Positions 2,292 through 38,800 of a stretch of DNA of 64,000 nt are shown here, piece after piece. Both the position numbers and the translations under genes were made by a program. This DNA is from Calcarisporiella thermophila CBS 279.70 (Eukaryota; Fungi; Calcarisporiellomycota), in the NCBI RefSeq assembly GCF_041956535.1, contig NW_027192203.1, positions 679,406 to 743,405 on the forward strand. Reading direction: 5' to 3'. Numbering within the stretch: position 1 is the stretch's first letter; each line of letters begins with the position of its first letter. The notes below the pieces were generated by a model that worked only from the letters and a program-made list of their open reading frames with translations, ran no database searches and was not told the DNA's origin.

Positions 2292-3497
2292 ATGGAGACT
2301 AGTCAGAGTCAAGGTCGGTCACTGCCCACACTTGTCACCGTCAAACCTCAACAGAAGCCGGCTACGGTTGTGAGGCATCAGTGGAGCTTCGTCGACTTAC
2401 TGGCTGGAGGGTAAGTCATGTGTTTTGGGGTTGTCCCTCTTTGATTTGAAGATCTCAGCCCATGATTGGATGCTCTGCGATATCTTAGGGCGGGCGGTAT
2501 GATGGGCGCAATATTTACATCGCCACTGGATGTGGTTAAAACACGATTACAAGTAAGTGTCCACATGTCATGTCTATCGATGTCGAGCATTGAATGATGT
2601 TGGTGCCCTCCTTTCTAGTCGAGCCACTATCAACAGGCAAGCTCTGCGTCTCGTTCCGTAGCCGTATGGAGCCATTTCAGAGAAACTGGCCGGATTTTAG
2701 GGTAAGAATGTTAAAATCGGGTGCGGTGGCCAAGCCCCAAGAGATATTAACACTTTTTGTCATGCCGGTTGCACAGAAATGTATATAGGAAGGAGGGAGC
2801 CCGGGCACTATTTAAAGGACTAGGCCCGAATCTCGTGGGGGTGATACCCGCACGCGCTATCAACTTCTGGGCCTATGGCAACGGCAAACGCTTCTACACG
2901 GAGCTGTTTGGGCGGGAGACCACGCTGGTGCACCTTATCTCGGCCGCCACCGCCGGCATCGTCACCTCCACCGTGACGAATCCGATCTGGGTCGTGAAGA
3001 CGCGCATGCAGCTGCAAACCTCCAACTCTAAAGACCACAAGAATCCGCAGTACCGCAACAGCTTTGACTGCACGGTCAAGATCCTGCGCCAAGAGGGGCT
3101 CCGTGGGCTCTACAAGGGCTTGAGTGCCTCCTACCTGGGGGTCACGGAATCCACCATACAATGGATGCTCTACGAGAACTTCAAGAAGGTGATTCGCGGG
3201 TACCGGGAACAAGAGGGAGGCGACTGGGTCGAGAAGATCGGCGCAGCCAGTGCCGCCAAACTCATCGCAACCACTATCACATACCCGCATGAGGTTCTTC
3301 GCACGCGGTTACGACAGCTGCCTGGCGAAAATGGGGTCGTAAAATACACGGGGCTAAAACAGTGCGCCATGCTAGTCGTACGAGAAGAGGGCATCCAAGC
3401 GCTCTACGGCGGAATGACCGCCCATCTCATGCGAGTCGTGCCCAATGCCGCCATCATGTTCTTCGTCTATGAGATGATCATGCAGCACGCTAAGTAA
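2292..3497 (+). CDS. RIM2: Mitochondrial pyrimidine-nucleotide carrier (Rim2/SLC25A33-36 family), 4 exons
   Basis: Three carrier signatures PLDVVKTRLQ, PIWVVKTRMQ and PHEVLRTRLR; also GLGPNLVGVIPARAINF and HLMRVVPNAAIMF. Confidence 0.92.
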
Positions 3498-31407: not shown

Positions 31408-31736
31408 TCAATCATAATAGCGTTGCTTCATAGCGCGGTATTTTCTCAGGGAGTACATCGCTTCCAGCTCTGGTTGCGAAGAAAAAAGCAATTATTCAAT
31501 TAGCATTTACACGGGGTATCCTCCAATCTCGTACTCCACCTACCCTTTTTTATATACTCCCCAAACGCCAAACCTTTCTTAATTTCAGCCTCGTCGGTAA
31601 TGTTCCTTTTTTTCATAAATGCATCCTTTAAACGCGGCCGGAAATAGGACTCATAGCCCAGTGGATATTCACGACCTAAGTGCACAAGATCTTTATAGAG
31701 GCGAATTACTTGTCCTCTGAGCTCTGCTTTCGACAT
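31408..31736 (-). CDS. LYRM5: LYR-motif protein LYRM5/ETFRF1-like (2 exons)
   Basis: LRGQVIRLYKDLVHLGREYPLG..FRPRLKDAF..GEYIKK|ELEAMYSLRKYRAMKQRYYD*. Confidence 0.9.
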
Positions 31737-32048: not shown

Positions 32049-35000
32049 ATGTTCCATTGTATAAAGCTCAATAGGAGACCAAAGCCGCCCACGTTATTAA
32101 TATGGGCCGTCCTTCTGATCTTGTTATATGCCAATGCAGTGAATGCCTGTAAGCGTTCTGAAATTGCTCAATTGACTTCTCTTCAAATGAATTAACTGTT
32201 TCACTAATTCCTAATTTATGCAAACAATAGCACAATTTGAAATTCAATGTCAAATGGTTCTCAGCGGGTAAGTGCCCGATCCGCTCTTCTATCACGTTAA
32301 AATAAATGCCCTCTAATTTTTTTATAGACATGAAAATATCTTCCTGGATGGCGAGTGCCTTTTGGCAAGAAATGTTTGGAGGAATTCCGAAAACTGGCAA
32401 ATTGTACTCTACAATCAGTCCGAATATAATGTGATACGCAATTCAATTACCGAAGGTTTTTAGTCACTCCTGCCTGCCTATTTTCCGTGGATTGATTTTA
32501 TTGAGCTGTCTTCGTTTATTAGGTCGCATTTTGCGGCCTCCCGCCTGCATGCCAAAATATAATGTCGCCAACTGGCTGAACCAGACGAGTCGAGAGATAT
32601 TCTACCCACTGCAGCAAACAATCAATATCTCACCCTCGGATGTTTGGTATGTAGACGAGAAAGCCGCTGTAAGTATCGCTCTGTGTTGGGCTGTATCAAA
32701 ACATTTCCCATAATACACGTATTTCTCTACTCCTTAGACGCTCACCACCTACGTGTCCTATCAAGTATTCATCGAGAACTTTATCACCGCAGCGCCTCCT
32801 CAATTTTACCTCGAGGCGGTATTTCGAGCTGCCTCCGGAATGGAGCTTTCACGCACTTCATCGGAAATTGTAGCCGCCGTTAGCGGGTTAGCTGAGTATC
32901 TGGACGTGATGGGGCTCAATCAGATTGGCTCCGGGACGTATGCCTGGCGAAATATAGCCATTCCACGGGGGACAAGGAATGTTGATTTTATCCTATGGAG
33001 CTACGGGGGCGGCGTGATAGGATACGATGAAATATTCGGGGTGATGCATATAGATGGGGGGACAACGAGAACGGTGGAGAAACTTAATTTAGGTAAATTG
33101 TTGGCCTATGGTATCCCGTGTGCCTTCACCGAGTGATTTCATCTTCTTTCTTAGCGGAAAAGGTCGCGTTTTGGATTGTTAGTGCGCAGACATTGATCAT
33201 CCCCTTGCTGCTCTACTTTTGGACGAAGCGTGTCCTCAGAATTGATTTCCCAGCGTATTATTACCGAGCTTGGAGTCTTCAACCAGAACGTTCCTTGTAA
33301 CTATTTCTTTTCTTTTTCTAACCACTAGCCCTATCGATTTTTCTGCCCGCCAACCTCACTATGGGTTTCTGCTTACGCTCTTCTCCTCGCTTTCCCTGTT
33401 CCTGTTCCTTGATGCCTGGGCCGTCATCACCTACGACCAAAATAGCATCGTTCTCTCCAATCTTTTCCCAAAAATCTTGGAAACCTTGCGCCTTCCGCTG
33501 GTCTTCATGTACCACGGAGCCCTCTTCTACCCGATCTTGCTGTGTTACCAGCTTGCCCATGCGACACGAGTCGCCGGGGCCATGGGGGCAATAGCGTGTC
33601 TCTTCCTTCTGGTACATGCCATCCTACAGCATATTCCGAATGTAATCTCGGTCCGGCGCGTTTTGTTTGGGACCACGGTGTTGGTGCAAATGCCAGGCTA
33701 TGTGTCCCAGATCATCCTTGCTCTTTATTTTGTGCGAAGAGTATTCGATGCGCCGTCGCTAGAGAAGCATCGAAAGTGGCTGGTGCTGGCAGAGATGGAG
33801 GAGTTGTATGTGAAGCTGCTCTTCGCAAAAAACAAGCAGATGGAGGAGGAAACGCGACCCCTGACGGCATGGGAGCGAATCTGGCTATTCATCACATGCC
33901 GAGGATGGAGGAAAAACAGGGTCATGCCGGCAAAAAAGCCAAAGAGAAAATGGCACGAGCGGCTATGCAATACGCTGGGAATGCGGCAAGATATTAGGTG
34001 AACAATGGAGACTCTTTTTCACCATAAAATATCCAAATCAGCTGAGCGCCTATCCTCTCCCCATAGAATCCCGTTCTCCGTGATGGCCATGCTCATTATG
34101 AACATCATCATGATGTATCAAGTGATCCTGTACTTTATTCGCCAAGCATTCCTCAATCTCGGCTCCTCTATCGCGTGTAATCTCGTAAGTCTTGCTGTCG
34201 TCTCGAATCACGCTTCCGACCCTATCCGCCTGGCGCGTGAAGTATACATCGCGCTTGTGACGAACATGCTGGTCTCGTGTATTGGAGGGGGAATTGGTAA
34301 GCTATAATATCCGCTCTTGCGTCATTATCTTGGATAGAATCGAAACTAAATTCTGTGGTATGGCTGCATCGTATATGATGATATAAAAAAAAACCTCCAA
34401 AGCATGCATCCATTTCGCGACACTAATCATTCGACGGTATACCAAGGATATCCTCCTAATCCGGGGTGGAAATTATCACCTCTTCGTCGGCAAGAAGAAG
34501 CACAACCGTATCTCGCTCAATGACAGCATCGGGTTCGTAGGAATAGGGGTGGGATTCGGCCTCTTTGGGTGCTTTCTCCTGATCGCCGAGCTTTTCCTCA
34601 TCGGGTCCATGATTATTGCCATTCACTATGTCCACCGATTACGCTCCGCCTTCATCCACCACGTCCTTCAAGGCACCCTGTTCTGGAGTATTGTGATCGC
34701 ATACTTTGTGTATTATGTGCAGCGGTTCATCACGCACTATTTTTTCGAAGAACGAGAAGCCCGATTCTGTATAAAAAGAAGAGGCGTCTTTTTCCATTAC
34801 TCTTATTTTATGACCTTTGCAGACTTCAGCATTGGGCTGACAAGCTATATTTTCAGATTTGCACAGGTCCTCTCCCATCCTGCCCCCCCTCCTTCCTTAC
34901 ACTGTCTTATTGATATTAACCCTCTCGGCCTTCACTCTAGGCTATTTTGAACGGCCCCTTCTTCTCCACCCGCCCAGATCGCAACCTCGAACGCTGGGAC

Positions 35001-35650
35001 GCTCGCAATGAAGATCGAGGATTTCGGGCCTATCTCGGGGTGCTGCTCCTAGATCACCACATCAACAATCCCATTCTCCTTACCTTTTGTGAAATCCTCC
35101 TCCAAAAACTGCCCTCGAGCTCGGCCTCTTCTTCCCCCAATATGAGCGCCATGACCACAGATAAATCGGGGAGAACCACCATGGTAGGGGGAGATGCCGA
35201 GGAAGAGGAAAGTATCGCGTACGCGAAAGGATATGCCGATCCCTTGGGGATAAATGAGAAGGAGCTCCTGAGAGAGAGGGAATTGAGACGAAAGTGGGCG
35301 AGAAATCGGTGGTTTGTCGCCTTCACCCTGATATTTAACCCCTCGGTAAAATCTACTTTGACCAAAAATGCGAAAAATGACCTAACCCCTTACTCTCCTT
35401 TCCCCACCCTCCTCATCTACAGCTGCGCAAAAACCGTTGGCAACTCTGCTCTGCAGAGGAGCTCTACGACGTCTACACCGAATTGCACACGCCCCGCAGC
35501 TTCGTCAGCTCCGATACCCCGCCCGACCCATCCTTGACGCCCACCTTTGCGCCTGCATCTCCCTTAGAGCCCATCGCGCCATCTAATCCAAGAGCGAGGC
35601 TCTACCTCCGTCCGACGAGAATCCGCAACCCGTCAACGGGGTTCATTTGA
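32049..35650 (+). CDS. STRA6-like (RBP-receptor family) multi-pass membrane protein with signal peptide and N-terminal ectodomain, about 11 exons
   Basis: C-terminal DRGFRAYLGVLLLDHHINNPILLTFCEILL and ARNRWFVAFTLIFNPS|LRKNR match the STRA6 signature as I recall it (DPGY..Y..FL....HP....FC.LLL; ARARW.LAYTL..NP.L..R). About 9-10 hydrophobic helices between 33.1 and 34.9 kb. Confidence 0.8.
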
Positions 35651-35889: not shown

Positions 35890-38800
35890 TCATACAAAAT
35901 CACTTTCTAGTGAGAAGAGCTCCGGGCTGCTTCGATTCCTCCTTGGAAGCCGCCGCTCCTCTTTAACCCCCAGCCACTGGTTGAACACGGTCTCCTTCTT
36001 GGGGCACTCCTCCACATACATCTCGGCCGCCCACTCTACCGAGCCGCCCTTTCGTCGAGGATGACCCCCCTCACTCAGCTCCTCCAACTGAGTCATATAG
36101 ATGTTCCTTAGTCCCTTTCCTTTGGACTTCTTTGAGGAGGAGGTCCCCGCCGTACTCACTCCTCCATTCGCGCCCTCCACCTTGACCACGCTCTTGAAGC
36201 TCGGGGGTGGCGTCAAGTGCAGCTCAAAGTTGACCGCCTTCCCACCATTTTCGTTGAAAATGGGATGGAGGGGCGGCGGCGGCAATAGCGAGGGGGCGGA
36301 AGCATGGGGCGGTGTCACCACTCCATCCTTCCTGCGCCCATTTTGGGGGTGGACGTGGGGTGGAGGTATGTAGCTGAATTGCTCCTGCTTGGGTGTGGTG
36401 GGGGCCGACTTGGACGCCAGCGAGCTAGCAGTCAAAGCTTGGGACTCTGACAGGCTGGCTTGAGAGTGAAGCGAGCGCTCTTCTGAGAGCCGCTTACGGC
36501 GCAGACGGTGCAGAATGGAATCGATCGTGAGTTCGATTTTACAATGGTTTTGGATGATGGATATTTCTGCAAAAGTAATCAAAAAAAAGGGAGGGGGGAG
36601 GCTCAATTAAACCAGAGGTTAAGGGGGAAGGTGAAGACATAAGAGGACTTACTCGGTCGAGTCGCCTTATCCCCACGTATGAAAGCATTCATAAGAAATT
36701 GGCGCGATGGATTCTCTGCGATTTTTAGGAAATCTGCATATGGAATATCGGGTAATATGGTGATGTCTCCAGAATATCGTTGGGAAACTATGTCCTGTGC
36801 ACGCTTTAACAGTGACGGCATGACGCCGAGTTCGAGTAGCTGGTAAAGCCGGTGTTCAAGTTCTGAACGGGCAAGTTTAAGAGCCAATCCAGCATATTTG
36901 TCGAAAGTGGAGGTGACAAAGCGAGGCTGAATAAATGGGATAACGTAGGGGTTCACTGCACAAGAGGAAAGGTTTCATGAATTACTGATGCGTCTAACAC
37001 ATACACACAAACGTACCTTGGCACACAATAAAATGGTTTACTCCAAAAAGCTCGGCCAGCTTATTCATCGGTAAATCTCTGGATAGCAAAGTGATATATT
37101 AGACTACAAGGATACATATCCAACTAGTTGAGTGAGCATGTTACCCCTCGATGGTCCCATCGATCCAGCGTTGATCTATCCATAGAAAAGAGGGTTAGAT
37201 CTCTATGAACACAGTGGGATGCCAATGACAAATGAGCAAACCTCCAGGATTCCAAGGAACCACCTTCCCGTTTTTATCTTTCGCCCAGATAGTCGAGGGC
37301 TGAAACAATAGAGGTACCGCACAAGAGGCCGCACTACATATATGTAAAAAGTTCAAGAAAAAATGAATCAGTAAAAAAACTCCCGTGCTCAGGAGGGTGT
37401 GGCGGTTGAGCGTGGACTTACACGGCCGACCAGATGAGCTAAGAGGTGTCGAAAGAGAGATTAGTTTTCCACAGCTTACTTGCTCTATCCACAGTTTGCA
37501 AGATACATACCACGTTGGGCGCTGTAAGATAGTTCAGTAATCGGGGCATCTCATATACAGTGCCAGAACTCACGGTGATATTAAGGACACAAGAAGTACG
37601 ATTGAAGGCCTCCTGAAAAGTTATCTCACCAATATTCTCCTTGAGGCACTCGATGAGGAACTGTGTATCGAAGAGTACGCCTACAACAAAAGGTTTAGCC
37701 GAGGTGAGCAGGACTAGCCGCGAGCAGAAAAAAAAGAGAAAATTACCTTGTTTAACAAAACGTGAGAGGCGATAAAAAACTGACTCGGGTTGGTCATCGC
37801 GATCAAAGGCGGTCTTTGAAACAAGAAACGAGGGTTAAAGAGGATCCTTTCTTAAGCTTGCCAAAAAAAGTAAGACGACGAGCTTACAAAGTTATAATTT
37901 AGGACTTGTTCAAAAGAGGTGGGGATTTCTTCTTTCGGCTTGGATGCCACGATGGCGGCAATGATCCCGCCACCCGAGGAGCCAGATATAATGCGTGGCA
38001 GGAGATCATTTTCGTACAAACATTTGATGACGCCGATATGATGCATGACTATATTGTAGGGGAGTGAGGGGATGAGACAGAAGGCTTAGCTTTAGCCGGA
38101 TGCTTACCTAAAGCCGCCCCACCACTTAGCAGCAGTGCGGTGCGTCCAAAGCTCATTCTAATATTCGTGAAGATCTCATACTTCTGTGTTGTAGTGAATT
38201 CATCGCATTCCAAATCGCAGACGATATTCAGTGTTTCGACCACCTCGTTGATATAGTCTTCGATTAACTTCTTTGTTCCAATGTGGGCATGCTCATAAAG
38301 CTATGGAGAGACAGCGATAAGTGTGGGTACAAAGGATCACAAGGTTGAATTCCCCATATAGTTACACTAGGATTTCCCATATCGCCCAATTTACGGGTGA
38401 GCGAGGTTCGGATAGCGAACATCATGGAGCCCAAATCGCCCTTTTCTCGAGCTTTGCGAAGCTGGGAGAGTCGATTCTGGATGAGCTCATAATCGTAGTC
38501 GGGTGATACGGGATCAAGTTTCCATTGATTCAGACCTAGGGTCAGGGAGAGAAGAAGATCAATAATGTGCTGAGTCATGCAATGGGGGATAGCCTAATGA
38601 CCTTGAAGCTCATCAAGTTTCATGGCCGCCTCTGCCCACTCCTTGTAGGTAGTCGCCGACTCCATTGCGCTGCGATACTGATACTCGAGTGAATAGGGGG
38701 ATATTTTCTCCAAGGTTTTCTACCAACAAGTGAAAGAGATTAGGCCCCGCTCCATCCAATGAACTCATCATCAAGGGTGGCTACGTACCTTCCACAGGAG

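Follow-up and report, generated by a model that had tools for sequence, protein, structure and literature searches.

A fungal STRA6/RBPR2 homologue with a β-sandwich ectodomain and a conserved, putatively calmodulin-binding tail in Calcarisporiella thermophila

Why does an early-diverging fungus carry a gene that resembles STRA6, the vertebrate receptor for retinol-binding protein (RBP), and what might its product do? The question is raised by a spliced gene at positions 32049-35650 (+) of a 64,000-nucleotide stretch from Calcarisporiella thermophila CBS 279.70, a thermophilic member of the Mucoromycota (assembly GCF_041956535.1, contig NW_027192203.1, positions 679,406 to 743,405 of the forward strand; this whole stretch is called the window below). 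An earlier note, made from the sequence alone, had read here a STRA6-like protein with a signal peptide and an intact calmodulin (CaM)-binding helix, and had named, as speculation, carotenoid-derived compounds or sterols as candidate ligands. Profile score and predicted fold firmly identify the 953-amino-acid product as a true homologue of animal STRA6/RBPR2 proteins. With a probability of roughly 0.55, we further consider it to be vertically inherited in early-diverging fungi, duplicated in Calcarisporiella and acting as a capped, CaM-linked conduit for a hydrophobic molecule.

Membership of the family was judged by a match above the gathering score of the Pfam family RBP_receptor (PF14752; 25 bits) over most of the profile length. 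The protein that the National Center for Biotechnology Information (NCBI) lists for this gene, the 912-residue uncharacterized protein VTP21DRAFT_2229 of C. thermophila (P0091; residue numbers below are those of P0091), scored 102.3 bits (E 3.7e-29), with residues 265-842 aligned to positions 70-603 of the 605-position profile. Exon 10 by itself still reached 43.1 bits (E 3.3e-11), and exon 9 matched collinearly at 15.2 bits. An AlphaFold2 (AF2) model of P0091 had a mean predicted local distance difference test score (pLDDT) of 68.9 and a predicted template modelling score of 0.67, the membrane core lying mostly at 80-95. When this model was realigned with VIA-align to Foldseek's top 1000 Protein Data Bank chains, zebrafish STRA6 (5sy1_A) ranked first among membrane proteins with Z 19.5 and a root-mean-square deviation (rmsd) of 5.7 Å over 428 of 582 residues (model 201-763, chain 26-574), as opposed to Z 8.8 for the next-best membrane protein. 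For the model of a paralogue, described below (pLDDT 60.4), 5sy1_A was the sole Foldseek match below E 1e-3 (E 3.1e-9, probability 1.00). The family assignment of the earlier note is thus borne out.

The gene runs from an ATG at 32049 to a stop codon at 35648-35650 and comprises 11 exons with a coding sequence of 2862 nucleotides (nt). Its ten introns, 60-106 nt each, all follow the GT-AG rule, and the frame is kept across 11/11 exons. We built the model from splice sites read directly and by comparing every open frame with the paralogue on another contig, so that it stands on frame, splice signals, paralogue conservation and NCBI's independent annotation; from residue 42 on, it equals P0091 letter for letter. 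Searches and folding were done with single exons or with P0091, the exons being joined just for checks of frame, length, identity to P0091 and coordinates. The exons, all on the + strand, are as follows:

32049..32148 (+), exon 1, proposed here and outside the NCBI model: start codon and putative signal peptide with a basic n-region and a hydrophobic core, ending in AVNA|S; the GTAAGC donor, in phase 1, was read from the sequence, and the paralogue has an equivalent exon with the same phase and donor type.
32231..32267 (+), exon 2: contains the ATG at 32254 that starts P0091; 11/13 residues identical to the paralogue.
32328..32455 (+), exon 3: part of the ectodomain, in which one Cys is conserved and an NQS sequon occurs; 49% identity to the paralogue by tblastn; as in P0091.
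32523..32668 (+), exon 4: ectodomain (GRILRPPACMPKY...) with NQT and NIS sequons; the β-sandwich starts at about 32609 (AF2 strands from P0091 residue 77).
32738..33092 (+), exon 5: most of the β-sandwich and, from 33068, the start of the first transmembrane (TM) helix, TM1; 52% identity to the paralogue; pLDDT 70-94.
33155..33254 (+), exon 6: remainder of TM1; donor at 33255 as in P0091.
33329..33997 (+), exon 7: TM helices belonging to the STRA6 core, with a loop on the cytosolic side; 58% identical to the paralogue; inside the part aligned to 5sy1_A.
34067..34296 (+), exon 8: TM helices; the preceding 69-nt intron takes out an in-frame TGA at 33999.
34403..34866 (+), exon 9: last TM helices, with the family-invariant R699 at 34855-34857; PF14752 15.2 bits, profile 348-486.
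34941..35345 (+), exon 10: cytosolic tail with motif 1, a low-complexity insert of about 50 amino acids and most of the BP2-like helix; PF14752 43.1 bits, profile 498-598.
35423..35650 (+), exon 11: closes the BP2-like helix with LRKNR (R842 at 35435-35437) and then runs through a tail rich in Pro and Ser to the stop codon; 100% identical to P0091 838-912.

Two introns have unusual donors, GTTTTT (32456-32522) and GTCCTC (34867-34940). Identity with the NCBI model confirms both, and the former is confirmed also by a matching split codon in the paralogue. For exon 6, a donor at 33296 was rejected because it would leave an intron of 32 nt, whereas P0091 has the donor at 33255. The gene is flanked by a short, divergent open reading frame directly upstream (31500-31736, -), which by eye resembles an LYR-motif protein (LYK..L...R pattern), and by a 238-residue Pro/Ser-rich open frame downstream (35890-36606, -) in a local GC peak (0.60).

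The paralogue lies on another contig (G000:C19, about 502900-506000, -; loci L001/L003) and corresponds to VTP21DRAFT_4016 (P0001; 877 residues, 55% identical to the protein under study), which matches the genomic copy with 100% identity across the longest aligned blocks and 82.9-98.3% over the rest. Beside this copy we noticed a gene whose product resembles a fusion of delta-9 fatty-acid desaturase with cytochrome b5 (L001 1-980). No family-invariant residue is lost in either paralogue, and exon by exon the two are 45-73% identical. This bears on the suspicion, nourished by the fact that no RNA run could be listed, that the gene might be silent or decaying and its resemblance to STRA6 a functionless relic. 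With 11/11 exons in frame, canonical GT-AG introns, all family-invariant residues retained in both copies, and copies that are sisters with moderate branch lengths, we judge this very improbable.

The NCBI models of both paralogues begin at internal methionines and miss an upstream exon. In the paralogue, this exon is found at L003 about 3140-3280 (-), where an ATG is followed by a basic stretch and a hydrophobic core that ends in GIA before a serine. In both genes, the upstream exon ends with a small residue, any residue and Ala before Ser, is in phase 1 with a T|GTAAG donor, and joins to the conserved exon 2 (QFEIQCQMVL), which stands upstream of both annotated starts with 11/13 residues identical, compared with an average of about 50% between the paralogues. 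The two public gene models can thus be corrected by adding the signal-peptide exon. Three N-x-S/T sequons lie past the predicted cleavage site, and the domain that follows has conserved cysteines. A signal peptide, as the earlier note had claimed, and an outside N-terminus are supported because the signal-peptide exon is present in both paralogues and because of the three sequons and the conserved cysteines; the predicted topology is one with the N-terminus outside and the C-terminus inside.

The distribution of the family was mapped with a HMMER scan using exon 10 against 1.84 billion representative proteins, which gave 47 matches at E <= 1e-3, of which 30 were looked up; word-index searches were too insensitive for this purpose (P0001 retrieved 4 proteins, alignment A2, described below, 3). 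The relatives among the 30 were from the fungi Rhizopus microsporus, R. delemar, Phycomyces, Hesseltinella, Lobosporangium and two Basidiobolus species, from the choanoflagellates Salpingoeca urceolata and Bicosta minor, and from animals (Nematostella, a starfish and hemichordates), the remainder being unnamed metagenomic proteins; no named match from Dikarya occurred among these 30. In a quick maximum-likelihood tree, one branch parts fungi from holozoans (support of 98 in the Shimodaira-Hasegawa-like approximate likelihood ratio test, SH-aLRT), and the two Calcarisporiella copies are sisters with moderate branch lengths, next to Mucorales. The duplication would be lineage-specific because the two copies are sisters on the tree. 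The pattern as a whole fits vertical descent from an opisthokont ancestor with loss in Dikarya.

STRA6 has been treated as animal-specific or as first appearing in vertebrates (PMC5977736, PMC12714816), and neither a literature link between STRA6 and fungi nor an experiment on a fungal homologue surfaced in searchable papers. The novelty is smaller than the earlier note implied, as homologues are already in databases: ORE14231.1 (Rhizopus microsporus), KAL0090791.1 (Phycomyces), ORX48209.1 (Hesseltinella), KAF9915451.1 (Lobosporangium) and KAK9762823.1 (Basidiobolus). UniRef lists the first of these (A0A1X0RQM2) under the automatic name 'Receptor for retinol uptake STRA6'. The fungal branch is database-visible but apparently unstudied, and its Pfam assignment is already precomputed in public resources.

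The strongest conservation in the family lies in the cytosolic tail. Motif 1 corresponds to D727-F751 (window 35013-35087, with DRGFRAYLG beginning at 35013), and motif 2, RRKWARNRWFVAFTLIFNPS continued by LRKNR, spans the last intron and ends at 35437. It forms part of a BP2-like helix that starts at 35256 and includes W826 (35310-35312) and T831 (35325-35327). These are the two motifs quoted in the earlier note, and both, like the spliced gene itself, were recovered by splice reading and by identity with P0091. In alignment A2, made up of 24 sequences (9 fungal, 11 named holozoan and 4 unnamed metagenomic), R699, D727, P746, F751, W826, T831, L832 and N835 are invariant in 24/24, and R823, G729, G735 and R842 nearly so. 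The most conserved 25-residue window of A2 is 818-842 and the second is 727-751, in other words the two motifs. The tail motifs of the family, D-x-G-F/Y...N/H-P...F and R-x-R-W...T-L-x-x-N-P-x-L...R, are present with all invariant residues kept, and phmmer places the two motifs on 5sy1_A 534-573 and 593-621.

Peptides comprising zebrafish BP2 (600-626) and sheep BP2 (625-656) bind Ca2+-CaM, the former with a Kd below 1 nM (PMC12714816). Residues 818-842 align with zebrafish BP2 such that 11/23 positions of 604-626 are identical (K, A, R, W, T, L, N, P, S, L and R), while another three show conservative changes (V/L, F/Y and I/V). The helix, with its ARxxW..TL..NPxL..R pattern, is intact, as previously noted. 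T831 and R842 fall on sheep T643 and R654. Given a one-residue offset, these probably equal human T644 and R655, mutation sites of Matthew-Wood syndrome in the C-terminal tail (PMC8595884). Residues 817-834 do not form a classical amphipathic CaM target: their hydrophobic moment is low (0.09 vs. a shuffle mean of 0.33). Basic residues make up the first half and hydrophobic ones the second, an arrangement seen in other family members too. The low moment fits the published BP2-CaM complex, which is non-canonical (PMC10871162). A complex prediction with residues 800-860 of P0091, a 149-residue CaM stand-in (P0127) and four Ca gave a score of 0.02, which speaks neither for nor against binding, peptides being outside the calibration of the tool. 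P0127 is identical in 137/149 residues to the genome's own canonical CaM, which is encoded by two exons (1366-1719 and 1167-1259, -, of locus L006, G000:C3:759765-762950) as a protein of 149 amino acids. Three other EF-hand loci were rejected as calmodulin, two of them (L004 and L005) being CaM-like single-exon genes and the third (L007) centrin-like.

At the opposite end of the protein, about 215 residues separate the signal peptide from TM1. Residues 77-201 (window 32609-33052) were modelled with good confidence as a β-sandwich whose end lies six residues ahead of the TM1 helix. This architecture, an ectodomain preceding TM1, is shared by all fungal members of the alignment, which have 165-235 residues before TM1, vs. 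26-71 in its named animal members. BLAST with the ectodomain matches the paralogue only. Residues 72-203 are structurally closest to the lumenal β-sandwich of the lipid-droplet protein seipin (6mlu_A, Z 10.2, rmsd 3.1 over 120 residues), with further seipin-type matches in 9c8d, 7rsl, 6ds5 and 7oxr. This match invites the view that the protein handles sterols or other membrane lipids, the β-sandwich serving as a seipin-like lipid-binding cap that feeds a STRA6-type cleft open to the bilayer; with only six residues between sandwich and TM1, the cap must in that case lie at the core's outer face. However, Z values of 9-10 are ordinary for the fold and equalled by the sugar-binding domain of Fbs1 (Z 9.1), by CBM22 and other carbohydrate-binding modules (CBMs) and by viral jelly rolls; DUF642, FBA and CBM (CBM_4_9) clusters likewise appear as look-alikes in the Atlas. 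We therefore regard a lipid-specific role of this kind as unlikely.

The same resemblance to sugar-binding β-sandwiches (Fbs1, CBM22 and other CBMs, the BC2L-C lectin and the Atlas clusters just named) could equally point to a surface sensor instead of a transporter, with a lectin-like ectodomain that reads a glycan or cell-wall cue and a tail that couples to Ca2+/CaM signalling. In favor of such a role, vertebrate STRA6 is reported to be a signalling receptor, too (PMC5549806). Yet the ectodomain matches are generic, sugar-binding residues were not identified, and conservation in the family peaks in the cytosolic and TM parts: in an hhalign comparison of the Calcarisporiella ectodomain with Mucorales N-termini, several motifs were collinear, but at E 0.023 and a probability of 2% the two are barely alignable, and homology was not accepted as proven. 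A sensor appears to us a little less probable still than the lipid-handling cap.

Which molecule, then, might the protein bind? Besides sterols, the earlier note had named, as speculation, derivatives of β-carotene, be it retinal or trisporoid pheromones, taken up or sensed by the protein. We searched the 28-Mb genome in six frames, exon by exon, for genes that such ligands would call for. No lipocalin (PF00061, the RBP4/CRBP family) was found, in agreement with the earlier statement that fungi have no RBP4, nor any LRAT (PF04970); RBP-type retinol delivery is therefore unsupported and, in so far as these searches make absence probable, excluded in practice for this organism. Equally, there was no match to the lycopene-cyclase domain (PF18916) or to microbial rhodopsin (PF01036), and phytoene synthase was not found, the two SQS_PSY loci having been rejected because their sequences read as squalene synthase and an NDUFAF6-like gene. 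For lack of lycopene cyclase, phytoene synthase and rhodopsin, a self-made β-carotene-derived ligand (retinal, trisporoids) is unsupported here. What does speak for an apocarotenoid is that the sole characterised family members move retinol, that Mucorales which use trisporoids (Rhizopus, Phycomyces, Hesseltinella) have homologues, as does Lobosporangium, and that the genome has about five RPE65/carotenoid-oxygenase loci (G000:C22:22823-24385, C11:262909-264675, C28:140306-142105, C25:1512-3108 and C8:118449-120054). RPE65-type oxygenases are thus present, but in the six-frame searches neither a β-carotene pathway nor a retinal-using opsin of the microbial rhodopsin type was found alongside the STRA6-like genes. 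Moreover, 0 of the approximately five oxygenase loci lie near either paralogue, the oxygenases may act on external carotenoids or stilbenoids, and the family extends to lineages without trisporoids, with members in Basidiobolus, choanoflagellates, cnidarians, echinoderms and hemichordates. For trisporic acid, class C G-protein-coupled receptors have been proposed as receptors in Rhizopus (PMC5705715), and the STRA6 homologue goes unmentioned in its supplementary files. Taken together, an apocarotenoid ligand seems quite improbable to us, and the carotenoid/pheromone idea is without support in this genome.

We thus return to the capped, CaM-linked conduit. The signal peptide would be followed by an external ectodomain that is glycosylated and contains cysteines, then by the STRA6-type TM core and a cytosolic C-terminal tail whose BP2-like helix would hold Ca2+/CaM, as in zebrafish and sheep STRA6. 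The protein would not be an RBP receptor but most likely exert the activity of the STRA6 core without energy input: a small hydrophobic molecule would travel between a binding site on the outside and the membrane or the cytosol, for passage or sensing, and CaM would control the direction or the gating. The ectodomain of the protein itself may provide this outer site, positioned where RBP docks in vertebrates.

Several points weigh against this interpretation. Identity to zebrafish STRA6 is about 14-16%, and a shared fold need not imply a shared activity; we know of no transport assay for any non-vertebrate member of the family. Binding of Ca2+/CaM by the BP2-like helix is a prediction that the complex modelling neither supports nor opposes. 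The AF2 model was built from a shallow input alignment of 24 sequences, and for the ectodomain Z values of 9-10 are common among unrelated β-sandwiches, so that its fold class is clear and its function is not. The splicing of the gene is predicted and its expression presumed, and absences concluded from the six-frame searches are probable, not proven.

With these reservations, the findings that no part of the family is better conserved across fungi and vertebrates than the BP2 helix, and that fungi have an ectodomain fused where vertebrates dock RBP, suggest that CaM control goes back to the family's ancestor and RBP docking was added later. One may go a step further and imagine that the ancestral opisthokont STRA6 was itself a CaM-gated conduit for hydrophobic molecules with its own ligand-binding β-sandwich, kept in fungi, lost in the animal line and later replaced in vertebrates by the soluble carrier RBP4, which docks at that same face. 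We put this forward as a long shot; if true, the fungal protein would show what the family's first ligand was and what CaM control originally meant. In any case, the ancestral function of STRA6 becomes testable in tractable Mucorales or by expression in yeast, where according to the earlier note the family is missing. The practical weight of the finding is moderate.

Seen against known systems, the fungal homologues stand closest: they share with the Calcarisporiella protein the clade, the motifs and the long N-terminal extension (165-235 residues), at identities of 24-28% for Basidiobolus ranarum and four Mucorales sequences and 21% for Lobosporangium. The lumenal domain of seipin, Fbs1 and CBMs have a β-sandwich of about 125 residues in common with the ectodomain (Z 9-10) but no sequence similarity to it, a resemblance of shape alone. 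With zebrafish STRA6 (5SY1), an RBP receptor resolved with CaM, the fungal protein shares the Pfam family, the TM fold and the two tail motifs; unlike it, the fungal protein has a signal peptide, a β-sandwich ectodomain of about 215 residues and a low-complexity insert of about 50 residues between motif 1 and BP2, and its genome yielded neither an RBP4-type lipocalin nor an LRAT partner in the six-frame search. Vertebrate RBPR2/STRA6-like and invertebrate 'STRA6-like' proteins (Ptychodera, Saccoglossus, Patiria, Nematostella) belong to the same family and carry the same tail motifs, but in the tree they group with the holozoans (SH-aLRT 98), and their N-termini are short. Since 'STRA6-like' proteins occur, too, in animals without the vertebrate RBP4 system, they pose the same ligand question as the protein of C. 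thermophila.

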